From Octopus sinensis (taxonomy: Eukaryota): a DNA stretch of 64,000 nt. Positions 3,041 through 64,000 of the stretch are shown piece by piece. Numbering within the stretch: the stretch's first letter is position 1; every line of letters starts with the position of its first letter. Below the pieces are notes generated by a model, which saw nothing but the letters and a program-made list of their open reading frames with translations, was not told the DNA's origin and did not search any database. Location: the NCBI RefSeq assembly GCF_006345805.1, contig NW_021825323.1, forward strand, positions 806,001 to 870,000, given 5' to 3'. A program made the position numbers and the translations under genes.

Positions 3041-3207
3041 CTTCATAAAGAATATTGGACTAATTTTTTACAAGGGAATGTGCATTTAGGTTCATTTTTC
3101 AACACAATAAACAGGATATTGTGTTTTGTGATAAAATAAAAAGACAGATCACAATCACAGATCATGTTTTTAGATCGTTTGCAGAAAATGGAAATAGAAA
3201 GATGTAC

Positions 3208-6392: not shown

Positions 6393-6449
6393 AATAGGTC
6401 AAAATTGTAACACAATAGAATGTGTAACGCAGATGGTTTGCCACATTTA
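6393..6449 (-). repeat. Inverted partial copy of one end of the MITE-like element at 61614-62665
   Basis: ataggtcaaaattgtaacacaatagaatgtgtaacgcagatggtttgccacat-tta aligns with the reverse complement of the element's left end once the nested CRE copy is removed (ataggtcacgtgtgtaacacgattgaatgcaacgcggatggctcgccacat-taa). Confidence 0.65.
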
Positions 6450-6634
6450 ATTACAAAAAAATTAATTAAATAACCAAGGTTTCTAGAAATTTTTTTGTAA
6501 AATAATCAAATACCCAAAATAAAATAATACTAAATTATGGAATAACTAAATATTGTAAAAATTTTAAATAAATAATTATATTAGTATTTAATTATCTAAT
6601 AATAGTTCAAACTAGCGTTTTTTCACGTGTTGCA

Positions 6635-8462: not shown

Positions 8463-8558
8463 AACATTTTATTGGTAAATAGAGACTTTCGAACGGCGAG
8501 TGTTTTGGTGGCCCTTCCTCGATCAGATACGGTCAACATCTTTTAAACTCGATTAATT
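8463..8558. repeat. 96-bp target-site duplication, left copy
   Basis: Identical to 11382-11477 (aacattttattggtaaatagagac...taaactcgattaatt); abuts the element's poly(A) tail. Confidence 0.95.
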
Positions 8559-11381
8559 CTTTTTTTTTTTTTTATTCAATATAACTGTAAACGAAAACAG
8601 AGAGAAAAGAGAGTTAACAAGAGGACTTCCCCGCCTCGTAGATGGAGAAACAGTTTCCACGTACAATGGCAAGGGAAATCCTCTGAAGGAGCCATCCACA
8701 CTCACGCGTGTCGTTTCTCTTGCGAGAAATCAGACGACCTAGCTTTTTGAGGAAAATGAGTGACCTGTCACCGATTACGCCAGAGGTCTCCACGGCGATC
8801 GGGTAAACAGATAGCGTTCCGAGAGATTGGTGTACTTTGAAATCTTTAATTCTTCTGCTCTGCGAGAAGCAGAGCCAGCTGCGACAGCTGAAGGAGGAGA
8901 TTTAGTTCAGAAAAAGTATCTGAGCAAGTTGCATCCCATATCAGCGATTTTCCGAACTCGAATGGGAAGGTGGATAGACCGTCAGGCCTCTTTCCGTCTC
9001 CCCTAGCAAGCCCGACTGGTTCGAGAATTGATGGGATTCCGGCAGCTTTGAGCCCCCTCAGGACGACGTCATTTAGGGCAGCGTGGCGTGGGGCACGCCC
9101 AGCACTGCGTCTGCAGGAAAGAGGGTGTAGTCCGTACTGGTCGATCATGGCCCCACAGCGGCACTTGTGAATTTCGCAGATCTTCAAACCGAGGCGGAGG
9201 GAGATAGCTACTCTGAGGCAATCGCCGTCGAGTAGTGTCCCGATGCTCGGAAGAGGGGGGGCCTTCAGCCAAGCACCGCTGCCTTGACAGCGACCTGCGC
9301 GTAGGCAGGCGAGGCGGTGTTGATTAGAGACGGCGATCAGGTCTTCGTATATTTTCTGACAGGAGATTTCATCCCATTGGCGCTGGATAGATGTGGAATC
9401 AGGTATACACGGGCCAAACCGAGCTTCCCACCGACCACAGGCAGCAGAGTAATCTTCAGACAATTTGCGTTCGGGAAGGTTTCTGAGAACGATGTCTGAG
9501 AGAATACGTGAAGCAGAGCGTGCGGAAAGGAAGGCTGGGAGGGCGAGATCGGAATAAGATCTCATGCCCAGGCCGCCCCAGCGCACCGGTAGAGATGCCT
9601 GAGACCAACCCGATCGTCAATGGCCAGATTACATAGCGAGCTCGTACCGAGCCTGAGGATGTTATCCAGATTTGACAGAAGGTCGTCTCTTTTGAAACAG
9701 GGAGCACACCTTAATGTGTAAAGGACCTTAGGCATAGAAAAGTAATTCCGCAGTAGGAAGAAAGCTACATGAGGCTCGATGTCTTTGAGCTTCTCGATCA
9801 TTTTGGAAAGATTAGAGATTTTGCAAGACAGCGTGTCTTCAAGGACAGAAGACCCATGGGAGCACCGAGGATCATCAAATTCGACTTGTCGGTGACTGGA
9901 CGTCAGAAAGGATATTTTGGCACGTGGAAGTCGCGACAGTGAATGAATTGGGTTAAGATTGATGTTCACCACTTCGGATTTGTTGTCGTTTATAGAAAGG
10001 CCAATGGCCGAGAGGGAAGGAATAATGAAACGGAGGTCGCCAAAAACAACATCGGGAGGGCCCAAAATGGTCGCATCGTCAAGGTACCAAATGTTAATTG
10101 GGGAACGGACAGTGGGCAATATTATTAACGCCCAAGGCGAAAAGAACAGGGCCAGGGGGTCACCCTGCTGAACCCCGGTAGACGAAGAAATAGGTATATC
10201 GTTGAACATAAGGATACTTGAGCAAGCATATGAGAGATGCACAAGGGGATAGGCGAAAGGGACTAATTCACGACAGCACTCCAGAAGGTGGTCCCGTCTG
10301 ATGGAATTGAATGCGTTGGAAACGTCCAATTTGACCATAATAAACTCCTCAAATGATTCAGTTAAATCACGAATTGAGTGGACAGCAGCTTCGCAGCCGT
10401 TAGGAACGCCAACCCCGAGTTGGACAGGCAGAAACTTCGAGGACAAGCAGGGAACAATGGCTCGACACAGAAGTTTAGCGGAGAGCCTCCGGAAAATATT
10501 GCCCACGGCGATGGGCCTCACGCCGTTGTCCTTTTTCCGAGGGCAGTAAGGTTGGCGGAAAAGAAAATATCACGAGCAAAATCGGGGAGGGACCGGAGAT
10601 GAAGCGGTTGCACAGGTTGGTGATTGAGCGTAGGAGTTTTCGACCAGCTTCGGCGGTAGTGGGAGACGTCAGGTCTTTCAGATGACCTGGTCTCAGACCA
10701 TCTACACCACCACTGCTTCCAGGTGAAAAGTCCTTCAGGGCATTCAGTACAAGAGTTTCCGAGACAGCAAAAGGATTGAGAGCGAGGGTGTCAGGGGACG
10801 GCTGAGGCCTGAAGTCGTTTGGCTGAGGGGGATGTTTTTCCCTGAGGGAATTCAAAACAGCAGGGGTCGTGGGCAAAAGGGAACTTGTCGAGGCAACCAG
10901 CCTAACTGCACCACGAACGTCGCCGTCCAAGAGTTTCTATTAATCTTTCTGTTGAGGTAGTCGACGTCATTCGCGTGAGAGACACATTATGGGATGGTGA
11001 ACCAGAGGGAAATTCGGAGCTAGCGAGGTGGTCCCGCAGCCAGCGGATGGAAAAAGAGTTCTTATCGTACAAGGCCAATTCTTGTTTGACGGTTGTAGCC
11101 AGCGAAATGGAGGAGGTTTTCACACGGGCTCTTAATGGGGCAAAACCGAGACCGAAAGAGGCGAAGCAAAACAGCTTAAGCCAATCGGAATGGCCATCAG
11201 ATGCCAAAGCCTTATCGATTGCGGCGGACAGGGAGGAGGCTGCAAAGATACGCGCAGCTTTGGGATTCTGGATGGGATTTTCGGAGACGACGGAAGAGCT
11301 TGATAGATTTGAGAACTTCCTCGGCAGACGGGATGTTGCGAATGGCGGTTTTTCGGGGAGTTCTTGCGGGCTGGAACACTG
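8559..11381 (-). mobile_element. CRE-clade non-LTR retrotransposon, near-complete 5'-truncated copy with several frameshifts
   Basis: RIPK..., LLDGDVRGAVRL, RPIAVGNIFRRLSAK, VKLDVSNAFNSIRR, GVQQGDPL, WYLDD (RT). Then C-x-C..H..SC knuckle, RHAALND, DGKRPDG, WDATC (RLE). Poly(A) on the minus strand from 8560. Confidence 0.95.
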
Positions 11382-11477
11382 AACATTTTATTGGTAAATA
11401 GAGACTTTCGAACGGCGAGTGTTTTGGTGGCCCTTCCTCGATCAGATACGGTCAACATCTTTTAAACTCGATTAATT
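11382..11477. repeat. 96-bp target-site duplication, right copy
   Basis: Identical to 8463-8558. Contains a minus-strand AATAAA (11387-11392) about 175 nt downstream of the MED14 stop. Confidence 0.95.
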
Positions 11478-16759: not shown

Positions 16760-19280
16760 AATCGATTATAAAAATTAAAGATTTACTCAGGGGTTATAGC
16801 CCAGCCGAACGGATTGCTTGCGTGTTCCCGCACACAATTGCGAGCCTCAACCAAGAGGAATGAGGATACCGAGGTCTTTTAAGAAGCATGAGGTCAGCGG
16901 GCCGGAAGCGCTTGGTCCAGAATTCCAGGAGGTCGGCAGTCGGCAACTCCAGAGAGAGTTCGTTGAAGGAGAGTAGAACCTCTCGGACAAGTTGACGGCT
17001 CTTGGAAATTGAAGAGAAATGTGCATGTGGCGCCAGATTCTTAGGCGAGCGAAGACCGATCCCTCCGAACCTGACGGGAAGTCCAGCCAATTTCGTCAAA
17101 GGAAATGTTCGAAACTGCTTCCGTGCAGGATTTCAATGATTTTTCCAAGGAAGACAGAATGTCTGGATGCGAGTAGCATGGCAGGCAGTGGAGCGTGTAC
17201 AGAAGTTTCGGCATATGTATACTGCTTTTCATGAGGAAAAAGGCGATGTGCGAGTCTAACTCCAAGAGACTGCTTGTGAGGTTACAGAATTCCATGTCCT
17301 TCTTCGCCAGATGGGCTTAGAGGGCATCCAAAAAAGGTTGCTTCTGATGGCTGGGTTACTTGTGCACCAGTGATGAAGTCTTGGATGATCATATTGAAAT
17401 TCGGAAAATTCGCCTCAGGGTAGTTGAGGTTTAGGAGTTCCGATTTATTCACGTTAACTTCTAGGCCAAGGTTGCGCAAAGCAGGGATTAGGCGGGATAG
17501 GTCCTCGGTGATGGATTCCACAGAGCCGCCAATGGTTGCGTCGTCCAGGTACCATAAATTGAATGGTGGGAGGATTGATCGTACAGCCTCGTCGATTGCT
17601 AAGGCGAATAGTAATGGTCCAAGAAAGTCGCCTTGTTGGACTCCAGTTCGGGAACGGATGACTTCATCCCCAAAGATAAGTGAGGTTTCTTCCCCGTACG
17701 AGAGGAAGACAAGCTGGGAAATCTCCGAAGCCCTCTCGACGCATACCTCCATTATTCGGTTCCTCCTGACGCTGTTGAAGGCGTTCCCCAGATCGAGTTT
17801 AACAGCCACGTGAGGATGGAGTAGGACATCTTTTAAGAGGAAGAGAGTTCGGGCCGCGTGTACGACAGCTTCGGATCCCGACTCCCAGTTGAAATGGAGT
17901 CAGTTCGGAACTTAGGCGGGGACATTCGGTCCTCGAGCCCAATTTAGCAGTCAGGCGGCGGAAGTAATTCCCAACTGCTATGGGACGGATTCCGCCATTT
18001 TTTTTCTAAAATGCAAGTAGATGTGCTGAGAAAAGCATGTCCCTCCACAGTGGGGGATATCCCCATTCAGTATCTTTTCGACTAAAGCGGCTATAGCGGA
18101 TATCAGAGAGTTGCCTGCTTCTCCAGTTGAGGGAGAGGTGAGGTTCTTGTTGTGGCCCGGGCGGAGGCCATCAAGTCAGCCGCAGCTGCTTTTGCCAAAA
18201 GATTGAATTGAGAACTGAATTTCATCTTCTGATGGGTTGAGCGTGCAAGACATAGATGGGCGAGTAAGAGGCCGTAGATCAGGAGGAGGATTCGGGTGTT
18301 TGGATCTCAGGTAAGCAAGGACAGAAGGAATTGGTTTTAACACTGTGTCGTCGTTTGAGACTGTGCGAATGGCAGCCCGGACGTCGCCCTCGGCTAGTTT
18401 GACACGAACTCGGTCATTCAGGGTGTCCTCAAAACGCTGTGGAATTTTCTTTTTGTTATTTAAGGAGTGCTTGCGGAGTTTTGAGGAGTTTTTGTTATTC
18501 GATCAACATCAGGCAAGGTTGTTATTGGGTGCGAAAGAATTCTGTTGATGTTCTCTTTAATCGATTCTGCGAGAGGAGGTGGATTTTTCCCAGTGCGGAT
18601 GGGGGTTCCGAGCACCAGTGGGGCAAAACTGATTAGACGAGACCATGCTTTCCAAATGTTGGACGTGAGCGCATCGTTGATGAAGGAAGTAAGGCATTTG
18701 GAAACTTGTATCCTAGCTGGCTTTGGATTGCGGAGGGGGATTTTCAGACAATTTCGGAAGCTGGACAAGTTGACGAGGAATGAGTTGACATCAAATTGAT
18801 GAGCACTAGCACTAGTTGTCTCTTTAGATGGTTCGGGGGAGCCAGAGAGTGGGATACAGTTCGGGAGAAGGCATGAGGGGCATGCCCATTTTTAGATAGC
18901 AGATGCAGTTTTTTTACTCAGCTTGACACAGTAAAGGTGGAAGAAGCGGTTGCATCGAAAGCAGCGGATACCGTTTTTCCCGGGGCGGGAGAGGCTGCAG
19001 GCTTCACAAATCGAGCTCTCGCGAAGGAAGTTGCGGATAGGAAGACACGGATTAAAGGAGGAAAGAGATATAAAGGAAGATGAGATAGGAAAAAAAAATG
19101 AGAAGAAAGAGAGTGGGTTAGATAGATCGAAAAAAAAGTTGAAAAGAAGTGATAAGAGAAAGAAAACAAAGATTGAAAAAGAAAATTGAAAGAGAGAATG
19201 AAAATGAACAATGAAAATGAATTGAAAGAGAGAATGAAAATGAACAATGAAAATGAATTGAAAGAGAGAATGAAAATATT
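16760..19280 (-). mobile_element. CRE-clade retrotransposon, divergent subfamily; 5' leader and PHD present, RT present, most of the RLE deleted; disrupted
   Basis: C/T-rich leader, PHD (18871-19008, with a stop), RNPKPARI, RPIAVGNYFRRL, VKLDLGNAFNSVRR, GVQQGD, WYLDD. The frame then jumps from WTKRF to WLRLAIVCGN, skipping the CCHC/PD motifs. Confidence 0.9.
19184..19277. repeat. 36-bp tandem repeat (about 2.6 copies) in the CRE 5' leader
   Basis: aattgaaagagagaatgaaaatgaacaatgaaaatg units start at 19184, 19220 and 19256. Confidence 0.9.
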
Positions 19281-20059
19281 TATCGATCCGTTGATTTCAA
19301 GACAAATTTTCAAAATCTGCAACTAATTTAACTATTTTAAAGATAGTAAATTTTTGGTTGCTTTGTTGGATAATGCATTTCGCGTTAACTCGTAGTGCTT
19401 CTAACTCAGCAATTGGCCTTGGATTTTAATGGACGTTTGTTCGCTCGATTGCCATATTATCGCTGTCAAGAATACATGTACAGTCAGGGAAAAAGTCATG
19501 GAGCGCTTTCATATTTTGATCCAATACTGTTGTTTAAAAAATTAATTGGAAATACAAGATTTTTTAGATTAATTGTTAAAAAAACTATATTCACTTGAGT
19601 TATAAAATATACTTTATGTATTCATTTTTTTAATTTAGAAAAGAATAGAATGATTTTTTATAGTTCAAGAAAAAGCAAAACCCAAATAAACAAGAAAAAA
19701 TTATTTGTCACAAAGAGGTCCCCACTCGGATCAGGACCTACACAACAGAGATTCCCAACTGGAATGCTTCCGCTGTTGTGTAGGAGCCCTGACCCTACTT
19801 GGAGTGGATATGGATATGCTGCAAGAGCTCCTGCTAGAAGGGAGCAATTCAGCAACATAGTCACCATTAACTCTGGCTCACGACAGATGAATTGGACGCA
19901 AGCTCAGAAGAGTTCAGTTGCCTTTGCATCAGTCTCGTCCTATCACCGTCCTTAATTCCTGTCACTTTCTCTTTCTCTGTTAATTACAATAAACTTCATT
20001 CATTCATTCAAGGATGAGATAAAAACAAGGCACCAAAGTGTCTCTTTCCATGCTAATCC

Positions 20060-20880: not shown

Positions 20881-22003
20881 GCGAGCAAAAAATGTCCAAC
20901 TCTTTTGATTCTCATTTATCTAGTCTTTTCCTAACATTCAGTCCGCTAGAGAGGGTGGGTTGCATTTTCTCAAAATTCCATAGGTAGCGTAGAGGAAAAA
21001 TTGGGGAAGGGAGTGTGTGGATTGACGCCTCTTGATTATTCTGATGCGCTAGTGCATAGATAATTATGCAGTTAATTTACATTTTGTATATTTAATTGAG
21101 ATCAATTTGAATATCTAATAATAATATTTCTATTTTTCGAGATATCCCGCTGCGTTAAATTGAAACTGTTAGACTCAACTTTCTTTAAAATTATTAAACT
21201 TATTTTCTGTATTGGAGAATATAATTATGTCCACAAGTAGAAACAATCTCGACTATCCTTTCAGCTACGTACCCTAGCTAGCATTTAACTTTCTTCTTGT
21301 TTTATTCGATTCAGAATAAATACATTCAAATAGTAAAAACGCACGCGATTTAATCATTTAATCATATTAAAAATTTAATCGTTTGGTGCAATAAATATAA
21401 TCTTCCACACAGGCATGCAAAAAAATACAACAAACCATATATTTTTTGGTGAAGCAAAAACTAAATACAGCCTGACTTAGCCATGAGCCAGAATTTCGAT
21501 CAAAAACTGACCTCTAAGACGTGAAGCAGATTGACTAGGATCTAGATCACCACAAATTGGAGATGGAAAGCCAATCTAAAAATGCGGTTTAGGTGGAAGA
21601 TTTTATCAAATTTATATGGTTGCTACAAAAAGAACATCGATTAAATACAGAATGTTTCACAAATATATAGAGTATAATTAAAATTTCTCTTTAAAAATTA
21701 AAGATTACATTTTGAAAATAATCTAAAACTATTTTGTTCAAACGTGATTCATTAATTATCATAATCGATTCATATTTTAAAATAATGTAGAGACAAGTCC
21801 ATTCAAGTATACTCTTTAATGGTTCATTTTCAGGATTATTTTTATCAGAATTTTTCTAAAATAGTCTAGTTTCAAATAAAGTTATTTGATATGCCTCCAG
21901 ACTTTACTTTTTATCTTTATTTGTTTATGTCAAATTGAAAAGAAAACCTTAAATTAAATTTTTTAATAAAAATTTAATTTTTAGCAAAGAACTAACATAG
22001 TAT

Positions 22004-22152
22004 TTAATTAGCAGCAGAGGATAAGATGGAATGGCAATTCCCACACAAGATGGCTATTGATGTGCGTTGGAAAAGCCATGTCCGTTCCCGATGATCATTT
22101 CTCCTTTTGCTTGCCAGGTCCCCCAGTTTAATAAGGAATTTTTTAGTTCTTG
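22004..22152 (-). mobile_element. Very short 3'-end fragment of a CRE retrotransposon
   Basis: RTKKFLIKLGDLASKRRNDHRERTWLFQRTSIAILCGNCHSILSSA* aligns with RSLIFLKKLGRLISRKRNDTRECGWLLQRISLAIVRGNCFSI of the 8.6-11.4 kb copy. Confidence 0.85.
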
Positions 22153-22790
22153 AATTAAATTAATAGTAGGTTTGGAATAATCTTAGAATGTTATCTTTGA
22201 TAAGACATGAAAGTAGATTGGTTTTAACTTCCCAAGCTAACAAAGAATAATCGTGACCAGCCGAAACCTCATTGATTGATTATAAAATGTATGAGGTTTT
22301 TAATCTTACAATTAAGATCGTAAAATACGATTCAATAGTAAGTATAAGTGTCTCCAACTGTGACTGAACTCTTCACTTCCAAAAATTATTTTTGATGTCC
22401 ATTTTATTAATTTTTGCTGTTATAAATAATTTATTATGATTTTAAATTATATTTATTCATTATTTTGTACTTCCTAGTGATTATTTTTGACAGCAGTAGC
22501 AGGTGCCTATACTTTTAAATGCTGTCAACTGTCCAATCAGTTGTTTTTGTCAATCATTGCACCATATTGAGTCAATTAGCCCAATTCATTGACTGTTTTA
22601 TTTATAAAATACTTTCCGCTGGGTCATTAAAAATATTTATAGTATTAATGTACTATAATTGACAAAATTATATCTATTAATACTTTATGGGTTAAGTATT
22701 TAGCACGGTTCCTAATTGATATCTTAATATAATTATAGTTTATAGATTATCCGTATTTGTCTGTCTACTAATTGCAACGATTGATATTAT

Positions 22791-24180
22791 TTGAAGGTCA
22801 GAATTATATCTTGTCTGGCCACGTTCGTTAATTCCATTGTATTATTAAAGACTATATTGTATAATTACGGCGACTATAAAAGCGATTTGCCGTATGCGAA
22901 TGAAATTTTCGTAATTCTTGAATCTGCTCGGCGGCTTATGAACACTTCAAAAATAGTAGCAATTCCTAATGATGCTGAAACATTAATAAAATCCATGAAA
23001 ATAAGCTGCCCAGGATGCTTAAACATAGTCCTAAAAGCCCATGCAATGAGATATCTCGACATTGAGTACACATACAAATTTATGGAAATAAAAATCCCAA
23101 TTAAGAAGAGGAGATTTCGTTTTTGGAAAAAAACAAGTTCGACCAAGAAAAACAACATTGGTTTTTTCTAATTTCTATTATTGCAGAGAACATGAAAAGA
23201 TGGAAGTTTGTAGAGACGATAAAACATTTGATCGGATATTTTTCCAATAAATCAAGTGACTAGCTGTCAACTGTCTATTTTAGACATTCAGAAGGATGGA
23301 ATTTTCAGAGTTAATGGGAATTGGAGAAAAGTAAATGTAATATGCAACTATATCAACGAGCCTGAATGCGATTTGAATCAAATTGATTTGGACGAACTTT
23401 CTGTATATGATGTGGCTTCGTCGTTTAAAATTTTGCTCAAGAGACACATACCAAACATTATTCCTAAAGAATTAGAAGAAAATCTACTGTTAATTCGAAA
23501 AAGTTTTAATTTGTTAATTATTCAAGATCTTCCTGAATCAGAAAAGGCGACCGCGATTGCATTATTGATCCGGCTACTTCCAGACTTTATGCAAACAATC
23601 ATGCTAATTTTATTCAAATTTTTAAAGAAACTCAGTATAGAAAATGTTAAAATGAGCCCTGAAGTTATTTCCCGAGTTTTTGCTCCCTCATTAGTCGTAT
23701 GATTTATCAATTATTCATATTAGATGACGAATTTGGATAGACTTACTAATATAATCCCAATTATTGCTCTAATGGTTAGAAACGGAGACAAATTAAATCT
23801 GGTATTTACATTTTATTACTATTTAATGCTTTAGATTCCCGCAGATATTGTTACTGAATTGAGGATTACTTATCTAAGATCGATCAAGGTCATTTCATTT
23901 AAAAATATTTCTTTAGAGCTCTACTGAAGACATTGATTTCATTTACAATGGGTATGGAAATATATCATCAATTTCTCCTGCAAATACTGAATCTGAATTG
24001 GATAAAAATATGCGAAGAATTGAGCAGCTTTGCAAGAGTGTTCCATTTAAGGAGGATAACACAGAAAGAAAATATAATAAACCAGAACATGAGAAAACAT
24101 TTGATATAGAATATGACGATTCTTTCGAGAAAGAGAACTTTGAACAGACAGCGAGTACCTCATTTTTCACCGAGTCTTAA
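22791..24180 (+). CDS. RhoGAP-domain protein (start uncertain)
   Basis: DGIFRVNGN (arginine finger), DVASSFKILLKRHIPNIIP, LLPDFMQTIMLILFKFL, KMSPEVISRVFAPSL. Confidence 0.8.
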
Positions 24181-25183
24181 ATAATTCATATGCCAAAACT
24201 TTTTAAATTTCTTAATTTTATTATTTCTCTTTAAATATGTAATAAATAGTTGAACTCTCTTTAGGTACGATAAGTGGTGTTAATTTACCTCCTTATTTCT
24301 CATTGATGTCTGGGCATGTTTTGTTTCTGTTTTGTAATTGGTTTCATTATTTAAATTTCATTGTATAAATTCTTTTGTTTCCTACTTAATTCCACTCATC
24401 CAATATTCTCCTTTCAAATTAAGTTTCAATAAAGTGCTTTCAAGTGTAGATCAAAGAGAGGTATCATTTTCAATGGGATAGTTCATTTAAAAAAATTAAC
24501 AAAACATGAGCTGAATTCCTAGTTTTAGGTAATTTTTATCATTTGAATTAGAGGATTTCTATTATAGCTACCACAGATTGGTTATAAATTATTTTGGATA
24601 AGGCCGGACTTCTTTCAATGCTCACAGAAATGGGAAATGCCCGGTTTAAATGACATTTTAAATTTAAAATAAAACATTTTAAATTCTATGGGAAAATTGA
24701 AAATCAATTTTATGCCGGTTATGGCTTTAATAGCGTGTTTCTCATTCTATAATAACATCGTGTTCTTTATATTATAAGACTCAGTTAGAACGTACTCGAT
24801 AAGTAAGATCTTGTTTAATTTTTTCCTTGGAATTCGATGAATATTAATATAGACTTGACTCGAATATAAGGCCTATTAATTTTTTATAGAAACACTTCAT
24901 ATTTGTAATCCCAATTAATAAACTATTTAAAGAGTACACATAGAAATAAGAGATTTTATTATGCTAAAAATGAAGGAAAATCAGAAAGCTTGGATTAAGG
25001 AAGCTAAATTAATTTTTTTTAACAAGGCAATGTTAATTAAGTGAATTTATGATGTTAATACTTTGATTGAGAGGACGCGCGAATAGATAGGAAGTTTCCG
25101 CGCAATATCGCTAAAAATTTTTCTAATTTGTTGGTCACCTCTCCCACTTTTGTCCAGTTGTCCAGTAATTGATATTTTGAATA

Positions 25184-34279: not shown

Positions 34280-34995
34280 CAGGGGTGTCAAAGATACGGC
34301 CGAGGTTAGAGGCCCTGTCTCGAAAGCGATTGGTACGAATATAAAACGCCGTCCAAGTTCTTGGTATTTTTTAATTTTGGCCGTCTCAGCCTTTTCCGCA
34401 GCGACCCTGGGGAAGTGGCAGATGACATGATTGCCGATGGAGAGAAAGAGTCGATGCACGTAGCATCCCAGACGGGGCACTTGCCTTCCCGAAAAGGAAA
34501 GATTGTCATTCCGTCTGGGCGTTTGCCGTCACCACGGTCCAGTCCGACAGGCTCAAGTTGTGACGGAAATCCTGCAGCCTTGAGGGCTCTAAACACGACG
34601 TCATTTAGCGAGGCGTGGCGGGGACTTCCACCGGCACTCCTGCGACACGAAAGAGGGTGGTGATGCCTTTTATATTATTATAATTGTTTTTCTTGTTTTG
34701 TGCTGATGCCTTTTTCAGCAAAACGTAAAGTTGATACAGAATGCTGATGGTGATTTTATAAAAACATGTATTATGAAAGCTACTGAAATCATGTCCTATT
34801 AATCGGCCTGATTTCGCAAGCATTAGCCTTACAAGAAATAATGTGGCAAATAGGATTTCAGATCTTTCCACTGATTTGCACAATCAACTCAAGACGAAAA
34901 TTAGTTCATTCATTACCTTTTCCATTGCTATTGACGAGAGCACTGACATTATGGATGTGGTTCAGTTAGCTATATTCATTCGTGGTGTGGACTAG
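34280..34995 (+). mobile_element. Second hAT (SPIN/GTF2IRD2-like) remnant with left TIR, containing a CRE fragment
   Basis: TIR-like CAGGGGTGTCAAAGATACGGCC preceded by ATCTAAAT (Buster-type central TA target). Coding remnant DGDFIKTCIMKATEI..ISLTRNNVANRISDL..FSIAIDESTDIMDVVQLAIFIRGVD. Confidence 0.75.
34312..34663 (-). mobile_element. Internal RLE-domain fragment of a CRE retrotransposon
   Basis: HPLSCRRSAG..RHASLNDVVFRALKAAGFPSQLEPVGLDRGDGKRPDG..WDATCID..KIKKYQELGRRFIFVPIAFETG; both ends missing. Confidence 0.9.
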
Positions 34996-35470: not shown

Positions 35471-36900
35471 ATGTTGTCACAAGGATTTAAAAACTCAAGG
35501 ATTTTTCAATTTATCCGGAAATTTACAACCGATAAATTAGAGGGTCCTCGTGTTGTCGTGACTGGCTTGGGACTTGTTACTTGCTTGGGTGTAGGAGTCG
35601 AGAAAAGTTGGTCTCGATTATTGGATGGCCAGTGTGGAATTAAAAAACTTGATGAATGTTATTTTTATTATTAATACAAATTTTTACAGCATATAATCAA
35701 GTACCTGTGAGAATCGCTGGAACAGTTGATATGAACCATCAAGATTTTATCAGCTGGAAACGTTCGAAAACCTCAAATTCTGCAAAAACTCGTGGAATTG
35801 CATTTGCCTTGGAAGCCTCAAGGGAAGCAGTTGCCGACTCGGGATTGTTATTCGCTACTGAAGAAGAACAAATACGAGCAGGAGTATTTTTAGATTTGGG
35901 TTAATTTTAAGGTATCTATAGGAACTGGAATCGCTGGGCTCGAAGAACTTTTAAAGGGGGATCAAATGCTAAAAGAACACGGAATGTCCAAAATAAATCC
36001 ATTTTTTATAACGAGAATTCTCAATAACACTGCAGCAGGTCACGTAAGTATAAATCATAATTTAAAGGTTTCTAATTTTTTCTATTTAAATAGGGCCCCA
36101 ACCTTGCATTATCCACTGCCTGTTCAACTGGTACTCATTCGGTGGGTGAGGCTTTTCTTTCTATAAAAATGGGGGACGCTGATGTAATGGTATGTGGAGG
36201 AACGGAGTCCTCTATATCTCCTCTCACTGTTGGAGGGTTTTCAAGGGCAAAAGCACTTTGTACTGATTCGAACGATTCACCTGAGACCTCATCTCGTCCT
36301 TTTGATTCTTCTCGAAGTGGATTTGTTATGTCGGAAGGTTGTGGAATACTTGTTTTGGAACGATATGATCTCGCAATTAAAAGAGGAGCCAAGATATATG
36401 GTGAAATAATGGGATATGGAATGTCTGGTGATGGATATCACATTACTGCTCCTCTTCCTAATGGTGATGGGGGTTATCGGTGCATGAAACAAGCTTTGGA
36501 AACCGCTGGGATTACCCCTGATTATATCGGATTTGTCAATCCGCATGCTACCTCAACTCCATTGGGAGATAGAGCTGAGAATGCGGCGATTAGGCGACTT
36601 TTTGGAGATCATGCAGTTAATTTGCAGGTTGGAGCTAATAAGGGATCAATTGGACACTCTTTGGGAGGTGCAGGAGCAATTGAGTTGGCCTTCTCAATTA
36701 AATCAGCTGAGACTGGTTTGATTCCTCCGTCAATTAATTTAAACAATATGAATCCAATTGACGAATTTGTTCTCAATTACGTCCCAAACAAGATACAAAA
36801 ATGGAAATATAGGCATAATGGGACTGGAAAATTGTTTGGTATCAAAAATTCTTTTGGATTTGGTGGCTGCAATGTCTCCATTGTTTTTAGTAGTTTTTAG
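35471..36900 (+). CDS. OXSM: Mitochondrial 3-oxoacyl-ACP synthase (KAS II/FabF type)
   Basis: RVVVTGLGLVTCLG, catalytic TACSTG, GFVMSEGCG, NPHATSTPLGD, NKGSIGHSLG, KNSFGFGGCN. Confidence 0.95.
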
Positions 36901-37454: not shown

Positions 37455-38310
37455 CGTATATTTATGGAAAATGTCGTCTGCCAATCTTTAAACAGTAGGA
37501 AATTTGGTATCCTGTGTGATTCTTGCTTTAACTACATCCATCTTGGCTCCATTTAAATGTGTCAGGCTTGTGACAGGGCCTTTCCAAACTGGCTTTGTGG
37601 TTGTTGCATAAACGTTGGAAAGAGTTTTAGAACTATTACTTCACCTATTCCTTATTTACCAATACCCACTTAGAAGAAATTTAATCGAAGCCCTAATGAG
37701 ATTTTGACATATTTTTCCAAATACTGCTGCTTGGGACATGTCCAAATTAGAATTCCGAAGTATGTAAGATTTTTAGCCGCCGATAAACTTGTTCACTTTT
37801 AGACTGGGAAAAATGTTTTGCCCATTTGCAAACTCTCACCTGATTTATTGATTAAAAATTCCATTGTCACTTATTGGAATTCGTCCATTGAATCTATATT
37901 TGGCAGTGAGCATTCACTACCTGCCGACACTTTTTCAACCTCTGAAGCCAACCTTAGAAAGATAGTCTATCGCATTGAGGATTCGGAGTACTGACGGCTG
38001 ATTTGCTGAGGTGAGTGAAAGTAATCTTAATTTGCTCCGCGATAAACATCCATCACGTCCTGTTCAATACGATCGATTTGTCAGCCTAAATACGCTTTTG
38101 TAAAGTCATAAAGGACGAGTTATTCCAGCTCAACTAGAACCCCTTGGGCTTATTTGTGAAAAAGGAAAACGCCCAAGTGGAGTTACGTTTTCCCTTTTCC
38201 TGAAGAGTGAATTTCTGCATGTACCGACACTTTCTCACAGTCGGTCTCTGACATAGGATCAGCAGGAAGGGTAACTAACACGAAATTTTATCACGTGCTC
38301 TAAGAAAAAA
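37455..38310 (+). mobile_element. Old CRE retrotransposon derivative: PHD and N-terminus joined to RLE, RT deleted
   Basis: PHD remnant 37464-37607, RIPKYVRFLAADKL (37749), DWEKCF, LLRDKHP. Continues directly into RFVSLNTLL..IPAQLEPLGL..GKRPSG and ACTDTFS. Confidence 0.8.
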
Positions 38311-39085: not shown

Positions 39086-39340
39086 ATCTATTGACTCAAC
39101 CAAATAGATTAGTAAATAAAAATTTTAAAAATATTTAATTTTCAAAAATAAAGCTTATCCTGGTTTAACATTTTTATATTTGAATTTTACAGATTTTCTG
39201 TTAGTTATCAAGAAAATTATTAAAAGAATAAATAACTCAAGTACAATTTTTTTAATTTATCTTGATGGATATTTTTTAAAAATTTAACGTAAATTGTATT
39301 GGTTATAAAACGATAGAACAAATCAAAAAAATGTTAGGTT

Positions 39341-41504
39341 TTATAAATCTGTTTGAGGATTTTTATTATTACATTCTGACAACTTGAATTGCAAAATTCT
39401 GTCGCTAAGAAGATCCTTGCATTTAAATAATAACAATAATCTCTAAAAATAATTTTAAATAAACCAACTTTAAGAAAATTCGTTTCTTTTAACTTATAGA
39501 AGTTATAGATAGTTGTTCCCACAATTGGGACTACTATAGTGCATGTGAGTAAATATCCCACTGCAGTCGCCCAAGCAGGGAAATAATAACCATCATATCC
39601 AACAGATGTGGAAAGCATTGTATTCATCACAAATACCGCCTAAAATATACGTTTTGTATATTATTAAAATATAATTTGAATAAAGTTGGTTAACATTTCA
39701 TCTAAAAATGGAAATGTTTTGTAAATAAATTGTAAACCAACTTTAAAAAAAACTTAGTGATAAAATTAGATAAAAAGATTTAGTAAATTGATAATACCAT
39801 TGTAAATACTGGAGTCACGAATGTGAAAATAAACTTCAAAATATTGCCCTGCCTTTTTAAATCTAGAATTTTTATTTCTTTTTGAATTCTGTCAAACCCT
39901 TCAAAATAAAATATCGAGCCATACCGTAAATCCATACCAAGGAAATTATTTCCAAAAATCCTGCCAGAATCAGAATTTGACTTACTGGAAAATAGTTGAA
40001 AATCTGAAAGACATACATCCCTCCCTGTTTTAAAGATCAGAAAAAATACATTTGTGACCATCGATAGTCCAACAAGAAATGATCCGATGCAGAGTAATAG
40101 GGTGATTACTTCCTTTCGATATTTTATGTTGAAACGACCTTCCAAGATATCTTCTATTGACAGGACACTTGTCTCAAGAGTAATGAACTAAAATTATTTT
40201 TTATTTCAGGGATACAGCGCTATCAAGTCCAATAAAAATCAGAGCTAAAAAGAAAAAAAATGACCAAAAATTTGCTCCGGTTAACTCGGCAAGAGCTCTG
40301 GGATAAGCTACAAATGCCAATCCAGGACCTAACGAGTGACGTAGCGTGGAAAACCTGAATCCGCAACTTGATCAATTAAGACGTTTTGACGCTGTGCCAT
40401 AAACCCCAAAACCGGAAAGATCACAAATCCCGAAAGAATACTACAACAAGAGTTCATTATGGCGCAACGTATCGAATCGCTTTTAAATTTGATTTTTAAT
40501 TTTTACTAATAAACGTTGGTGTCTATTTTATTGTGAGAAGCCAAAGCAGTAAGAACCCCCGAAGCCAGACCATATGAAAAAAATATTTGTCCACCCGCAT
40601 CCGACCAAACCTAAAGTTATCACTTTCTTAATTCACCTCAAAGTTTGCTAATTTGCTCATGTCAACAGAAAGATAATATTTAATTCCTGTTAATGCTCCT
40701 TTAAGAGAGCAACTTTTTCCCAAAAGAATCACAATCATAATAAATGGGAGAAGTGCTGTAACGTACATTATCTACGATTTTGATAGACTGATACTTACCT
40801 TGCCTGATACTTTAATCCCTTTCCAAATAACGAAAAAACAGATTATGTAACCGAGAGCCAAACAGCCAACGAGTGGCCAATTGAGTGACCCGACATCATC
40901 AATGGTGGGAGTCAATCTCAGGACGTGATTTCTACTCACGTTAGCAATAATCGAGCAACCTAAAATATTCGTTCACTGGGTCAGTGTAATAAGAAGAGTT
41001 ATAAACTACTAGAGAAAAGTTTGTCAGGCATCTATTTGTGGCCCATGCGGGATCGCAGTATGTCCATGGAAGTGGGTTGATCATAGATGCAAACATGTAG
41101 TATATTACCCAAGATAATATTTGGATAAGATAGATCCCCAAATATATGTTAACCATCAAAAATCCCAATCCGAGGCCTAAAAATCATGTCACATGTCAAC
41201 CTTCAAATATTGGGCAAAATTGCCAAACTATATAGGGAGATCTTCGTGTCATTTGGCCAAGCAAACACTCAAAGTAAAACAAAGGAATTCCACAAAATAT
41301 CGCTGACATAAAATAAGCAATTAGGAATGCTCCTAAATTGAGTTTGATATATATTTTCGTACCTCCACCATTTTTAAAGCATAAATACGGGAAACGCCAG
41401 ACGTTTCCAAACCCAATGGATAGTCCCATGGCGCAGATCAGAAAGTCAAGTTTCCTGCTCCATGTTTCATGTTTGGTAGTTAGGTTATCGTCGTCAATAT
41501 TCAT
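39341..41504 (-). CDS. SLC6 sodium:neurotransmitter/amino-acid symporter
   Basis: [84 protein letters not shown]. Confidence 0.95.
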
Positions 41505-42149
41505 TTTTCGTATTTGAATAATTCTACTTATATAACCGATTTGGTTAGCTAATGTAGCAATTATTGTGGTTTCAGACACAAATTAGTCGTTTTTTATTTA
41601 GAATAGTTTTCAATGATCTTTCTTAAAAAAATAAATTGTCAACACATTGCCTTCTCAACCTTAATTTGTTCATGTTCAGGAATTATTTTATATAAAATAA
41701 AAGCGGTTTTTTATAACCTAATTATCCATGTAATTTGAATATACAATTATTCTAGTGTTCGATTATTGAGCTGTGACTTCTGTGGTAACCACCTCAATAC
41801 ACACCTTTAATTTCTAAAACCTCCTTTGAACTCGATGGTTCGACGCTTCAATTTGTACTAGTTGCAAGGCAAAAAATTAAGGGATTCAACACATTTTAAC
41901 GTTTCCATATGTAATCATGGTAAAGCATGTTAAATTGTCAATAGTCAGTCACTGTCCACTTTTATTATTAAAAAACTTCATATCCTCGAAATATAAGAAT
42001 AATCCTTTTAATTTAAAAAAATTGTTCACATATTTTAGCCTTTTTGATGACTAGTGTACGTCAATCTGCAGTTTTCCAGCTGTTTAAGATCCATTTAAAT
42101 GACTAAAGTTAATTTCAATTATTTGACAAATGGATATTTTTAATATGAT

Positions 42150-52320: not shown

Positions 52321-54528
52321 ATGTTAGATCAAAGTTGCGATTTAGCCGATCTCAAAAAACAGGCCCACGAAATAATAAAAAAAATTAATCAATCAAAATC
52401 CGAAAATGTTCCATTAAAGGTATCAAAATTAAATCGGATTTTATATAGGCTCTTCTCGATGAAAATCGTAAATTTATCATGGACGAAAGAAAAAAGTTAC
52501 AAATAAATCACACAAAGATCTATTCCCCCCAAAATCCCCACTTTAACTTCAAAACTCCAAAAAAAGTTTTTTTAAATCGAATTATTGACAAGTGCAAAGT
52601 AAAGACATCTTGGGGCGAAAAAATATCGATGCTTATCCGTGATATACCCTACATTGACTCAATTCCCCATACTTATTCTTGGGAGCCAATAAATAAGAAT
52701 ATTTTTGTAAAATATATTGGTTTTATTTTTGGTGGAAGACGAGTATATTTTGCAGAATATTCCTTATTTGGGGGAAGAAGAGGATCTTTTTACTAGCCAA
52801 TTGATAAACGTTTACTACAATGGAAAGGTTTAATAGAAAATATTTATATTTTTAGATTCATGATACATCTGAACTCGAAACATTAGACGAACGTGATTTT
52901 AAGCTGATCGTAAAAGAAATTGAAGAATATGCAACTAAAAGCAGTAAAAATTAAAAAAGAAATAATCAGATTTGTCCAAGAAAGCTTCCTACGAGGCATT
53001 ATGTTCTGTTTTTTCCCCAATCTTCTCTCCAGATGAGTTTAACCAGCGTTTTGAACGTATTTGCAATGATTCGTTGATCCCTGTAATATACCGATCTCAC
53101 ATGGAAAGGGTGTAATGACCGGAAACATAGACTGTGAGATGGAGAGTGAGCTGCCAAGTGACAAGGAAATGCATTCCTTTCACAGCCTTTTCTGCCGCCG
53201 TTGTTATAAATACGATTGTCCCTTTCACAGTTAGTACTAAATTAGAGTAGTCGCAATTAGCACATGAAAATCAGATTTTGGCCAATCGGACGACCCATGG
53301 AAGGGAAAAGGGTAATGCCAAGTGCAGTGGAGCCTGCAATGGTGCCTTGGTTTATCTAGCTTCTGATGATTTATACTCTTCTTCCTGGTCTCCGAGAGAA
53401 ATGACACTTGTTAACATTCTTTTTGATGTTTTTGGCAACAATCCTTGTGCCATAACTCATCTTATGGGGACTAAAAAGTGCTGTGATGTATTTGATCTAA
53501 GTATATATGTCAGGTGACTCAATATATGGCTCGTTTTGAAGGATCTGCGAGACCAGTGACAAAATATGTTCCAAAAGCAATGAAAATAAGGAAAAGGCTC
53601 AAGTTAATATATTTCCCTTCATTGAATTTATAGAATTAACAACGTTCGTTTTCACTCAGCAATGTGTAAGACTCTCGGGAAATTAAGACAGGAAGTTTCA
53701 AACCACGTGCCTTGTTCTCATCCTGGCAAACCATGTGATCCAATCTCTTGTTCTTGTGCCAGCAGTTCCAATTTTTGTGAAAAATTTTGTGGATGTCAGT
53801 CCGATTGTTTGGAATTTATATTTTATTATCTACAAGGCAGCTACCGTTTTGCTGGATGCAAGTGTAGAGGAAATTGTTCCACCAAGCTGTGTCCCTGTTT
53901 TATCGCTCTGCGAGAGTGTGACCCTGATCTGTGCTTGTCTTGTGGGGCATCCATTATAAGTAAATATGATTACTCTAACATGATAGAGAACAACGAAGGG
54001 TGTTGTCGTAATGTGAACATTCAGAGATGTCTTAAAAAAAGGATTTTTATTGGTCGATCGACAGTTGCAGGCTGGGGAGTATTTTTGGGTGAGAAAGTAG
54101 AGAAGGATGACTTTATTTCTGAATATTGTGGGGAGGTGATGTATAATAGATTATTAAAGCTTATCACCCAAGATGAGGCTGACCGTCGTGGCCCCTTATA
54201 TGATAAGTATAAGTCAAGTTTCCTCTTCAACCTCAATAAGGGTAAAATGGAAAATAATCAAGACTAGATTACGTGGTTGATGCTACAAGGAAAGGAAATA
54301 TAGTTCGTTTTGCAAATCACTCTTTTCGTCCTAATTGTTATGCTAAAATTCTATTTGTGAACGGGGATTATAGAATTGGAATTTTTGCCAAAGAGAGTAT
54401 ATCCGTAAGGGAGGAGATATTTTTTGATTATTGGTAGGAGTATAGTTTTGCTACCTTTTAGTTATAGTAACGGCGACCACTTCAATTACATTGGATTGGA
54501 GAGATCCACCAATAGATTTACTTGTTGA
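52321..54528 (+). CDS. EZH2: Enhancer of zeste (PRC2 H3K27 methyltransferase)
   Basis: [23 protein letters not shown] domain [39 protein letters not shown] domain [37 protein letters not shown]. Confidence 0.97.
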
Positions 54529-61180: not shown

Positions 61181-61613
61181 AAACAATTAATAACATTTAT
61201 ATTGGCTTATATGTTTGAATTAATAATATAAAAATCATAGTTATTAATCGTTACCAGCATTTAGCCGCTTAAATTTTTTTGGGTGCTAATTGATCATTTG
61301 TTGTTTTTTGGTCTTATTGACGATTCTGTAAATGTTTCTAAGCTAATATAATTAAATCGTACAAATAGATATATTAGTTGTTTAGCAGTCGTCGGAGATA
61401 ATCGTTTCATACCTAAACTACTTGGCAAAGATTGCTTCAATAACTCTTAGTATATCTCCGAATAAAAGCATCAATTTTAAGCATAGTTTGACGATGCTTG
61501 GTTAGTACCAACGGAATATGTAGTGAATCAATAATTTATGTATGATTCAATTTATGTAATTTCTACAATTCTGTTTGAGTGATTCTTGCATGTAATTCTA
61601 ATTTTTTCATTTA

Positions 61614-62665
61614 ATGTGGCGAGCCATCCGCGTTGCATTCAATCGTGTTACACACGTGACCGTTTTTTTTTTATTAAAATATTTTAATTGTGAAATGTAA
61701 AAAGATAGCTAAGCTAATTAAAGGCCTCACGAGACACCCGGCCAGCCTCGCGAATGGCGAAGCCGTTCCCTCGGATCACAGCAATCGACAGACGTTCCAG
61801 GAGCCAAGAATACTCTCTTGGATCGTGGCTAGTCCTTGAAATCCGTCGACCGAGCGAGCGAAGGAAGCGGAGTGTCTTGGGGCCGAAGATCCCGGAGGAC
61901 TCCACGGCAATTGGGGTAAAGAACAGCGAGTTGGAGAGGTGGCCGTACTTGAGAATCTTTCGCTCCTCGGCCTGCCTCGAAGCGTGCCGAGGATTGGCGG
62001 CGGACAGAGCGAGATTTTCCAGCGAGAACGTGTCCGAAGAGGTAGAATCCCAACATTTGTGCGTCTGGCAGATTTTCAGCCAACACGGAGAGAGATTGCA
62101 ATTCTTAGGCATTCCTTGTCAAACAGGTTCCCGATGGAAGGGAGAGGGAGAGTCTTTAACCAGACACCGCTGCCTTCGCAGCGACCTGCACGGAGGCAAG
62201 CGACACGGTGTTGATTGGAGACAGGAAGGAGGCCTTCGAAAATTGCCTGACAAGAGATTTCGTCCCATTGACGCTGTACAGATTGAGAAATGGGCAGCTT
62301 CGAACCAAACCGAGCCTCCCACCGACCACGGGCACGTGACCTATATTGTGACCTAGATTTTGTCATATTTGACCTAGATTTTGACACGGATGATTATTGA
62401 TCCTGTAAAATTAAATAATATTTTTTATAAACATTTTATATATACCTTCATTTGATTTAATGTCACAGTCATCTTCTCAATTCAAGTCCGATGTTTCTTC
62501 TTCCTTATCTTCATCAATATTTAAACATTATAAAATTTAAAGTCACTTTCATTCCGCATAAATTTATTATACCTTTTAGTACGAAAATATTAAATACAAT
62601 TAAGAAATATTTATTAATATTATCAGTAAATTTTTAGAATGTGTAACGCGGATGGCGCGCGACAT
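61614..62665. mobile_element. MITE-like element (about 380 bp of its own sequence) with about 30-bp TIRs and TTA flanks, interrupted by a CRE copy
   Basis: Left end tta-ATGTGGCGAGCCATCCGCGTTGCATTC; right end GAATGTGTAACGCGGATGGCGCGCGACAT-tta; homologous end at 6393-6449. Confidence 0.65.
61662..62332 (-). mobile_element. Short CRE copy, 5'-truncated and internally deleted, with poly(A) and 9-bp TSD
   Basis: GRWEARFG..QRQWDEIS..KICQTHKC joined directly to WDSTSSDTFS..RKILKY..LERLSIAVIRGN. Poly(A) at 61663-61672 on the minus strand. CACGTGACC at 61653-61661 and 62333-62341. Confidence 0.92.
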
Positions 62666-62948
62666 TTAATATCCGACATAGTGAAATCTGTCAATTTGTT
62701 TTCATTCTTCTGGTTAATTCACAGATTATTTATGTCATTTATTTTTTAACATCTTTTGAGTTTCCAATTCACTTTCGCTGGTTAGTTGATATGAGATATT
62801 TGGAGTGCCGAACTTTAATCACTCATAGAATTGTTGATTAATTAATATACTTATTTAAATAATAAATATTATAATATTTATTAAATTATGAAATTTGTCT
62901 ATATCCTTTGTTATTGTTGTTTTTTGTTTTTACCGTTTTCTTAGAAAG

Positions 62949-63629: not shown

Positions 63630-64000
63630 ATAATTCTCTCTCTCTTTCCATTTCTCTTTATTCTCTCTCTTTTTCCATTTCTTTTTGTCATCCATTTGTT
63701 CATTGTTTTTATCTTGCTCTCTTTTTATGTCTTTCTGTTTCCAACCCACTTCTGTTCTATGCTCTACTTGCGAAGTTAGTAACAACCGCAAGAAAGGGAG
63801 AGTCTGTTCTAGTTGCGACAGATTCTTCCACCTTTCTTGCGTGCGTCTTTCCAGGCGCGTTTCTGCCTCTCTCTTAATTTGGGACTGTCCTTCCTGCCGC
63901 TCTTGCCAGCCGTTCAGTGTTCCAGCCCGCAAGAACTCCCCGAAAAACGCCATTCGCTGCATCCCCGTCTGCCGAGGAAGTTCTCAAATCTATCAAGCTC
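63630..64000 (+). mobile_element. 5' end of a CRE retrotransposon (same family as 8559-11381), ORF open from 63727 to the window edge, N-terminal PHD finger
   Basis: 63911-64000 nearly matches the reverse complement of 11292-11381. ATG 63727 gives MSFCFQPTSVLCSTCEVSNNRKKGRVCSSCDRFFHLSCVRLSRRVSASLLIWDCPSC with no stop. Confidence 0.9.

Follow-up and report, generated by a model that had tools for sequence, protein, structure and literature searches.

A PHD finger in the N-terminal finger slot of an animal CRE-II retrotransposon from the Octopus sinensis assembly

Long interspersed elements (LINEs) with a restriction-like endonuclease (RLE), such as R2 and CRE, are textbook site-specific retrotransposons and are now engineered for gene insertion. 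Copies of an element of the CRE group that has a PHD finger at its N terminus were found in a 64,000-nucleotide (nt) stretch of DNA deposited under Octopus sinensis (contig NW_021825323.1 of assembly GCF_006345805.1, positions 806,001 to 870,000 of the forward strand), the whole of which is hereafter called the window. Elements of the CRE, R2, R4, and NeSL clades are mostly target specific, and those of the HERO clade mostly are not (PMC4640811). It is established knowledge that the CRE elements of kinetoplastids insert specifically into spliced-leader genes and have C2H2 fingers (see also PMC4640811), while dispersed insertion is described for the RLE elements HERO, R2NS, and BLAG (PMC4640811, PMC5035012, PMC7650587). 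Surveys of RLE LINEs report zinc finger and Myb N termini and never mention a PHD finger (PMC5678591, PMC4640811, PMC5035012, PMC7650587). PHD fingers are documented in CR1/L2 LINEs (Jockey superfamily), which use an apurinic/apyrimidinic endonuclease (APE); some of these LINEs have a single open reading frame (ORF) that starts with the PHD and is preceded or accompanied by a repetitive 5′ region, and a role in general targeting has already been proposed for these fingers (PMC4120745). Full-text searches, with the Repbase and Dfam annotations left unchecked, returned no published description of a PHD finger in a CRE or other RLE LINE. The element described here is a CRE-group RLE LINE whose finger slot is occupied by a PHD.

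The copy on which the analysis centers, copy E, runs off the end of the window. Its features are as follows.

63633-63686, plus strand: 5′ untranslated region (UTR) of copy E, two tandem 27-nt CT-rich units (ATTCTCTCTCTCTTTCCATTTCTCTTT), from a repeat search
63727-64000, plus strand: first 91 codons of the copy E ORF, with the frame open up to the window end
63760-63897, plus strand: PHD finger (C4HC3) of copy E, residues C12 to C57, from Pfam, a family hidden Markov model (HMM), AlphaFold2, and Foldseek
63912-64000, plus strand: stretch common to copy E and the 5′ end of copy A, from blastn and tblastn

Positions 63633 to 64000 are the 5′ UTR and first 91 codons of a CRE-group non-long-terminal-repeat retrotransposon of the animal CRE-II lineage. 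An in-frame stop codon lies at 63631, and the next ATG, at 63727, starts the ORF; the alignment of another copy (copy B) begins at this ATG and has GTG in its place. The translation of 63727-64000 on the plus strand (MSFCFQPTSVLCSTCEVSNNRKKGRVCSSCDRFFHLSCVRLSRRVSASLLIWDCPSCRSC...) has the spacing C12-x2-C15-x11-C27-x2-C30-x4-H35-x2-C38-x13-W52-x-C54-x2-C57, exactly as an initial annotation of this DNA had read it from the same ATG. That annotation called the domain a PHD finger, and the Pfam HMM, the ligand pattern, and the predicted fold all agree: copy E scores 27.0 bits against Pfam PHD (PF00628; gathering cutoff, 24) and 53.6 bits against the family PHD HMM. The overlap that it had noted with the reverse transcriptase (RT)/RLE element at 8.6 to 11.4 kb is also real. 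Because 63912-64000 matches 11384-11296 at 95.6% nucleotide identity over 90 nt (blastn), with 83% identity between the peptides (tblastn), the PHD is linked with the RT/RLE body that copy A carries. A search of the protein collection with the 91-residue N terminus of copy E returned no candidate protein.

The body of the element is seen in copy A.

8559-11381, minus strand: copy A, 5′ truncated, with N-terminal domain, RT, linker with CCHC knuckle, and RLE, from family HMM positions 51 to 971 and RVT_1

The reading frame of copy A changes at least four times, and the copy ends in a short 3′ UTR and an A14 tail. The motifs of its nuclease block (PRHxALND, KRPDG...WDATC, and AExRKxxKY) and its knuckle (HKCRCG...H...C) are the same in its relatives. 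RVT_1 was found by Pfam in copies A and B, and this match and the structural similarity of a full-length relative to the RTs of R2 and LINE-1 identify an RT of the LINE type; the RLE gave no Pfam match because Pfam has no model for it. When the stitched copy A protein was used as a query, more than 1,060 clusters matched, and the 120 closest served as relatives; no APE domain is annotated among these 120. Intact relatives consist of one ORF of ~970 to 990 codons, with a domain order of PHD, flexible linker of ~20 residues, helical N-terminal domain opening with a conserved IPKxAR motif, RT, alpha-helical linker with a CCHC knuckle, and PD-(D/E)xK RLE, and the PHD begins 5 to 25 residues past the initiator Met. 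Six of them (P0001, P0004, P0005, P0017, P0019, and P0036) are single proteins of 968 to 987 amino acids that contain PHD, RT, and nuclease, and P0001 and P0005 are each encoded by one uninterrupted ORF on a contig of their own (loci L006 and L007). The finger is therefore the N terminus of an RT and RLE polyprotein, as first proposed, on the evidence of both the overlap of copies E and A and the intact single-ORF relatives.

At least 43 of the 120 relatives start with a PHD finger (36 complete C4HC3 fingers, 34 of them with exactly the spacing of copy E, and 7 partial fingers cut by the gene call), and most of the remainder are N-terminally short gene calls. Precomputed Pfam matches to both PHD and RVT_1 exist for 16 of the 120, so the combination is visible in databases. 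The PHD-CRE architecture is common among unnamed public sequences and is not special to this genome.

Two further PHD-type 5′ ends lie in the window.

16905-19029, minus strand: copy B, decayed, with PHD, N-terminal domain, and RT in order and no RLE, from tblastn and family HMM positions 8 to 701
18871-19008, minus strand: PHD finger of copy B, with one stop codon (Pfam PHD, 35.9 bits; family HMM, 48.6 bits)
19184-19291, minus strand: tandem repeat in the copy B 5′ UTR, about three 36-nt units, from a repeat search
37464-37799, plus strand: lone decayed 5′ fragment with stops, a degenerate PHD (37476-37607) and then the IPKxAR motif, from the family PHD HMM and the translation

Copy B belongs to a divergent family, with ~45% amino acid identity to copy A; its RVT_1 match scores 45 bits, and its finger, at 18871-19008 on the minus strand, translates from 19008 to 18871 as CEACSLSRPGKNGIRCFRCNRFFHLYCVKLSKKTASAI*KWACPSC. 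The 37.5-kb relic has no Pfam PHD match over 37464-37607, and it scores 17.6 bits (independent E value, 6.7e-6) with the HMM built from the family's own PHDs. It retains the N-S-R-K loop of the family, and IRIPKYVRFLAADKL, which holds the conserved IPKxAR motif, follows ~46 codons downstream; the loop, the HMM match, and the motif together mark it as a real decayed 5′ fragment. Both additional copies listed in the initial annotation are thus genuine, with one correction to the 37.5-kb copy: the Ser stands in place of the Cys that follows the His (HLGS), not of the first Cys. This relic also lacks the second Cys of the first pair. CT-rich tandem repeats with a common TTCATTCTCTCTTTC-like core precede both PHD-bearing 5′ ends of copies E and B; an internal promoter and an element of the 5′ UTR are two possible roles.

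With copy E cut by the window end after 91 codons, its finger pattern might be due to chance, or the PHD might belong to a host exon next to a LINE fragment. We find this scarcely credible, since the exact finger pattern, which the window contains two times when translated in all six frames, appeared in 0 of 200 shuffles, since the window holds three independent PHD-type 5′ ends (copy E, copy B, and the 37.5-kb relic), each followed by element sequence, and since the 43 PHD-bearing relatives have the finger in one ORF with RT and RLE.

The full-length AlphaFold model of P0001, for which the 120 relatives were the input, had a predicted local distance difference test score (pLDDT) of 92.6 and a predicted template modeling (TM) score of 0.87, with the finger at residues 11 to 58, a low-confidence linker at residues 60 to 79 (pLDDT, 51 to 58), and then the helical N-terminal domain, RT, linker, and nuclease. 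Its best matches in the PDB are cryo-electron microscopy structures of R2 in target-primed reverse transcription (TPRT), which align over 880 to 970 columns (TM score, 0.5 to 0.64; identity, 16 to 18%) and through the C terminus, the RLE region; LINE-1 ORF2p is the next structural match, behind R2. By sequence alone, R2 is a weak match (E value, 4e-8) that covers the RT only.

The CRE label of the initial annotation was upheld by both the blastp ranking and a neighbor-joining tree of the RTs. Clade references were taken from the RLE LINE alignment in the supplement of PMC5678591 (18 references), and the trees were built by neighbor joining with midpoint rooting and 300 bootstraps. The best blastp match of copy A was Repbase Cre-1_BM (Bombyx mori, LINE/CRE-II; 330 bits; E value, 3.6e-108; 36% identity over 562 amino acids), followed by CRE2 (76 bits), Cre-1_HM (74 bits), SLACS (60 bits), CZAR (58 bits), CRE1 (45 bits), and R2 (~40 bits). 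The family grouped with Cre-1_BM, Cre-1_HM, CRE1, CRE2, SLACS, and CZAR in 300 of 300 bootstraps and with Cre-1_BM in 245 of 300, with Cre-1_BM nested inside it, and Cre-1_BM joined a lepidopteran sub-clade in 292 of 300. These sequence comparisons confirm the element as a member of the CRE group, more precisely of the animal CRE-II lineage. Two other clades were considered and rejected on both blastp and the tree. HERO was weighed because it is a mostly nonspecific RLE clade, but its blastp E values exceed 0.3, its identity in core columns is 12 to 13%, and it falls elsewhere in the tree. R4/Dong was weighed because lepidopteran hits had hinted at Dong; it gave no blastp match at an E value of ≤10 and ~16% identity. 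The label "SLACS protein" on relative P0051 was taken as a lead only and not as evidence.

The N-terminal slot of the lineage is modular. The N-terminal C2H2 finger of CRE elements is replaced by the PHD in the window copies and is present in the lepidopteran sub-clade. Seven relatives (P0087, P0091, P0102, P0109, P0113, P0056, and P0057) have a single C2H2 finger in the PHD slot, upstream of the IPKxAR motif; eight proteins have a CCHH-like finger there (GQCxxCLRVLSLTxAGLLHxHGxGCPG); and P0030 and P0060 have a Cys-rich module. In a tree of the conserved core, the PHD is found on nearly every deep branch; a single nested clade, which includes named lepidopteran proteins and Cre-1_BM, holds the C2H2 and CCHH types, and the Cys-rich type forms a separate small nested clade. 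Given neighbor joining and midpoint rooting, the PHD looks ancestral and the C2H2 finger secondary in the sampled clade. That the finger is ancestral in its lineage had been proposed from the window copies, and the proposal extends to a clade far wider than one genome; the accompanying idea of a swap away from DNA-sequence targeting is doubtful in its direction, with the PHD on deep branches and the C2H2 types nested.

A profile of the PHD plus linker, searched against 1.84 billion representatives, matched 4,619 clusters at an E value of ≤1e-3 and 318 at ≤1e-10. Among the best 150 matches, 45 run through the family-specific linker; other matches are ordinary cellular PHD proteins such as KDM5 (PHD3), a CHD-like helicase, and an MLL-like protein, and this search did not reveal a donor of the PHD domain. 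In P0048 and P0110, a nuclear-receptor-type C4 DNA-binding domain (PF00105), within the N-terminal ~90 to 100 residues, lies directly upstream of the PHD, and P0027 and P0086 have a ubiquitin-hydrolase (PF00443) match, which suggests that the N-terminal slot of this lineage collects additional modules.

The AlphaFold2 model of the copy E N terminus predicted an interleaved two-zinc PHD fold with pLDDTs of 94 to 97 over residues 11 to 60. The best Foldseek match was the AL1 PHD bound to H3K4me3 (5y20; TM score, 0.85; root mean square deviation, 1.1 Å), with further matches to Pygo, BPTF, PHF8, PHF2, and TAF3, and the sequence profile matched DPF2, EBS, PHF2/8, BPTF, TAF3, and CFP1 at E values of ~1e-9. 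The zinc ligands (C12, C15, C27, C30, H35, C38, C54, and C57) are invariant in 31 of 31 aligned family members, as is the Trp before the last Cys pair in the family alignment. The initial annotation proposed that this lineage reads histone H3K4, i.e., that the PHD is a reader of the histone tail (H3K4me3 or H3K4me0) that steers the ribonucleoprotein (RNP) to a chromatin state and replaces DNA-sequence targeting. In favor of this, the finger has a canonical PHD fold with all eight zinc ligands and the Trp invariant, its best structural and profile matches are readers of H3K4me2/3, with KDM5 PHD3 among the nearest profile matches, the insertions have no common DNA target, and the same idea has been raised for the CR1/L2 PHDs (PMC4120745).

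The residues of the finger point elsewhere. Cage columns were mapped through a HMMER alignment to EBS and through the numbering of BPTF, whose cage residues we take to be Y10, Y17, Y23, and W32. The four cage-equivalent columns are aromatic in 0, 1, 2, and 11 of the 31 family members, and in copy E they hold Leu, Ser, Gly, and Phe; the two to four aromatics at fixed positions, including a Trp two before the His, that mark H3K4me3 readers of the BPTF/ING/TAF3/EBS type are not conserved in the family. Its most conserved feature apart from the zinc ligands and W52 is instead a basic N-x-R-K-[KR] loop (N19 in 26 of 31 members, R21 in 27 of 31, a basic residue at K22 in 31 of 31 and at position 23 in 23 of 31), and EBS has Asp158-Asp159 in the columns of the near-invariant Arg-Lys. 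All 36 complete family PHDs are net basic, at +2 to +10 (mean, +5.1; copy E, +5; copy B, +8), in comparison with -7 to +2 for seven HMMER-aligned PHD fingers from the PDB. Acidic residues near C1-C2 contact unmodified K4 in BHC80 and AIRE, and such residues are not conserved in the family alignment. Since the H3 tail is itself strongly basic and the finger is basic with no aromatic cage, histone-mark reading is unlikely, and guidance by histone marks is not supported by the residues as aligned.

Our preferred interpretation is that this CRE-II LINE uses its PHD as a sequence-independent electrostatic contact to nucleic acid and not as an H3K4-methyl reader, which, judging from sequence and predicted structure, we consider somewhat probable. 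The element would be copied by TPRT, as in R2, and its hallmarks are of the TPRT type, namely a single ORF (L006 and L007 loci), 5′ truncation, and, in copy A, an A14 tail and a target-site duplication (TSD). As the PHD sits in the slot of the C2H2 fingers of R2 and of some CRE-II sub-lineages, it would most likely be the target-engagement module of the element. It would hold the RNP on DNA or chromatin by sequence-independent electrostatic contacts, with target or nucleosomal DNA, or RNA, as the partner, and would not read H3K4 methylation; the loss of the cage, the nearly invariant basic loop, and the net basic charge together favor such engagement. A contact that neither reads methylation nor depends on sequence would fit the loss of site specificity.

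Alternatively, the PHD may have nothing to do with target choice and may serve RNP assembly or RNA binding, the recruitment of a host protein, or nuclear import. Its R-K-K/R loop resembles a nuclear localization signal and is the best-conserved nonligand feature, the finger sits on a flexible tether, CR1/L2 PHDs occur in ORF1 beside RRM or CCHC RNA-binding modules (PMC4120745), and the two relatives with an added nuclear-receptor-type domain suggest that DNA targeting, where needed, is supplied by another module. We nevertheless hold such a role to be doubtful, because the PHD lies exactly where R2 has its DNA-binding fingers and C2H2 fingers take its place in part of the clade, because the rest of the protein architecture parallels that of R2, and because RNA binding by R2 is attributed to a region that directly precedes the RT and not to the N-terminal fingers (PMC5678591).

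The insertion sites bear on the same question. Copy A is flanked by a long TSD.

8463-8558: TSD arm at the 3′ end of copy A, 96 nt, an exact match to 11382-11477
11382-11477: TSD arm at the 5′ end of copy A, 96 nt, an exact match to 8463-8558

A TSD search around 16 copies found only this one and an imperfect duplication of ~48 nt at a related copy in contig L001. The 3′ junctions of copy A, of the copy at 61.7 kb, and of copies in contigs L002 and L003 consist of poly(A) followed by unrelated AT-rich flanks, and no common target sequence was found across ~5 junctions, so the earlier statement that the copies share no DNA target stands for these junctions. The window was also scanned for RNA genes that could act as a multicopy target, and neither an Rfam family nor a tRNA gene turned up. 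The LINE pieces, ~8 in the window, lie between host genes in AT-rich intergenic DNA. The insertions are dispersed, unlike those of classical CRE elements; the specificity of the latter for spliced-leader genes or telomeric repeats was not seen here, and it is not a defining trait of the RT clade. The 96-nt TSD of copy A is 100% identical, yet the element between its arms has at least four frame changes, so either a defective RNA was mobilized in trans or some of the changes are indel errors of the assembly. A TSD of this length is unusual for LINEs, R9 being the known extreme. A bolder version of chromatin targeting, which we regard as a long shot, would have the basic PHD dock the RNP on nucleosomes by contacting either the H3 tail or nucleosomal DNA, with the two nicks about one nucleosome wrap apart explaining the 96-nt TSD; the CRE-II elements would then be the first RLE LINEs guided by chromatin and not by DNA sequence, with a naturally swappable N-terminal slot for a PHD, a C2H2 finger, or a nuclear-receptor DNA-binding domain plus a PHD.

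Several points weigh against the interpretation of the finger as an electrostatic nucleic acid contact in a dispersed CRE-II element. The PHDs nearest to it in fold and profile (AL1, Pygo, BPTF, PHF2/8, TAF3, and KDM5 PHD3) do bind the H3 tail or H3K4me2/3, some histone-binding PHDs are mildly basic (MLL3/KMT2D, +2), and the finger could still bind the H3 tail by way of the beta-strand and the pocket for its N terminus. Copy E was followed only to the window end, so that its own RT and RLE are deduced from copy A and the relatives. In addition, the clade placement comes from neighbor-joining trees with midpoint rooting, and with ~5 junctions and one or two TSDs available a weak target preference could be missed.

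The remaining pieces of the family in the window are as follows.

3202-4034, plus strand: 3′ fragment of a divergent copy, RLE and C terminus, from tblastn and the family HMM
21983-22162, minus strand: short C-terminal fragment, from the family HMM
34313-34668, minus strand: short RLE fragment, from tblastn and the family HMM
61663-62381, minus strand: 5′-truncated copy, RLE and C terminus with an A10 tail, from tblastn and the family HMM

The copy at 61663-62381 is 94 to 95% identical to copies in contigs L001 and L003. It is bracketed, together with ~300 bp beyond, by a 29-nt inverted repeat (61609-61637 and 62642-62670; 86% complementary) that may represent the ends of another small mobile element. 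A 68-nt segment at 25044-25111 is 97% identical to L001 positions 6427 to 6494, inside another CRE-II 3′ fragment, and is probably a further small remnant of the element family. Copy B and the fragment at 37464-37799 retain the 5′ end and lack the 3′ part, the opposite of the usual 5′ truncation of LINEs, which suggests that copies in this compact genome decay through internal or host deletions.

Host genes of the window gave Pfam matches to Arm repeats (importin/catenin-like), RhoGAP, beta-ketoacyl synthase, an SLC6 sodium:neurotransmitter symporter, and an EZH-type pre-SET CXC domain, in the following regions.

6863-7345: host-gene Pfam region
23256-23702: host-gene Pfam region
35471-36900: host-gene Pfam region
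39334-41579, minus strand: host-gene Pfam region
53662-54267: host-gene Pfam region

The window has a G+C content of ~33% and several genes per 64 kb, and gaps of under ~65 bp separate the coding ORF segments that belong to the same gene. Dicyema japonicum, which lives in Octopus sinensis, has a mean intron length of 38 bp (PMC6736024), and the host of the window resembles a dicyemid rather than a mollusc. Five contigs of the Octopus sinensis assembly GCA_006345805.1 (L001 to L005: VCDQ01003444, VCDQ01002078, VCDQ01011229, VCDQ01013059, and VCDQ01008158) carry the same LINE family at 92 to 95% nucleotide identity; all of their copies are 5′ truncated, and neither tblastn nor the family HMM found a PHD on them. 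Products on these contigs are named as octopus proteins, and the LINE-carrying contigs of the assembly may be parasite contamination. One relative, P0002, is a chimeric gene model in which an intermediate-filament protein is fused to a LINE RT.

Within the CRE group, the family represents a large animal lineage that seems to be active and in which an R2-like enzyme core has a PHD in the slot of the DNA-binding fingers. The replacement of the PHD by C2H2 or other fingers in sub-lineages makes the targeting slot naturally modular, and the PHD-type and C2H2-type members form a matched set for studying the gain and loss of target specificity. If the finger touches chromatin, the lineage would be a direct case of LINE site choice by chromatin state; if the finger is only a basic nucleic acid clamp, it would explain how RLE elements become dispersed.

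Among described elements, the closest are Cre-1_BM and the animal CRE-II group, which likewise have the RT motifs, an LPVRxGGLG motif, and a CxCG...H...C knuckle. Full-length members of the lepidopteran sub-clade of Cre-1_BM have one C2H2 finger at their start in place of a PHD; the N terminus of Cre-1_BM itself is absent from the published alignment. The kinetoplastid elements CRE1, CRE2, SLACS, and CZAR are the sister group in the RT-to-knuckle tree and have the RLE downstream of the RT, as here, but their identity to the family is only ~21 to 25%, and dispersed insertions and the PHD are traits of the family. HERO, R2NS, and BLAG resemble the family in their dispersed insertion despite an RLE; the RT shows no significant similarity to that of HERO. 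The rDNA-specific R9 element of rotifers is said, in the title of a 2009 paper, to have an exceptionally long TSD, and to that extent it parallels the 96-nt TSD of copy A. CR1/L2 PHDs have the same top PDB matches (Pygo and PHF8) as the copy E finger, but these LINEs have an APE upstream of the RT, belong to a distant RT clade, and usually carry the PHD in a separate ORF1, whereas the family is without an APE, has a C-terminal RLE, and has the PHD in the same ORF as the RT. R2 (R2Bm and R2Tg) differs from the family in its clade, its C2H2 and Myb modules, and its fixed 28S target, but shares with it the same fold over ~900 residues, from the N-terminal finger slot through the helical N-terminal domain, RT, and linker to the RLE.

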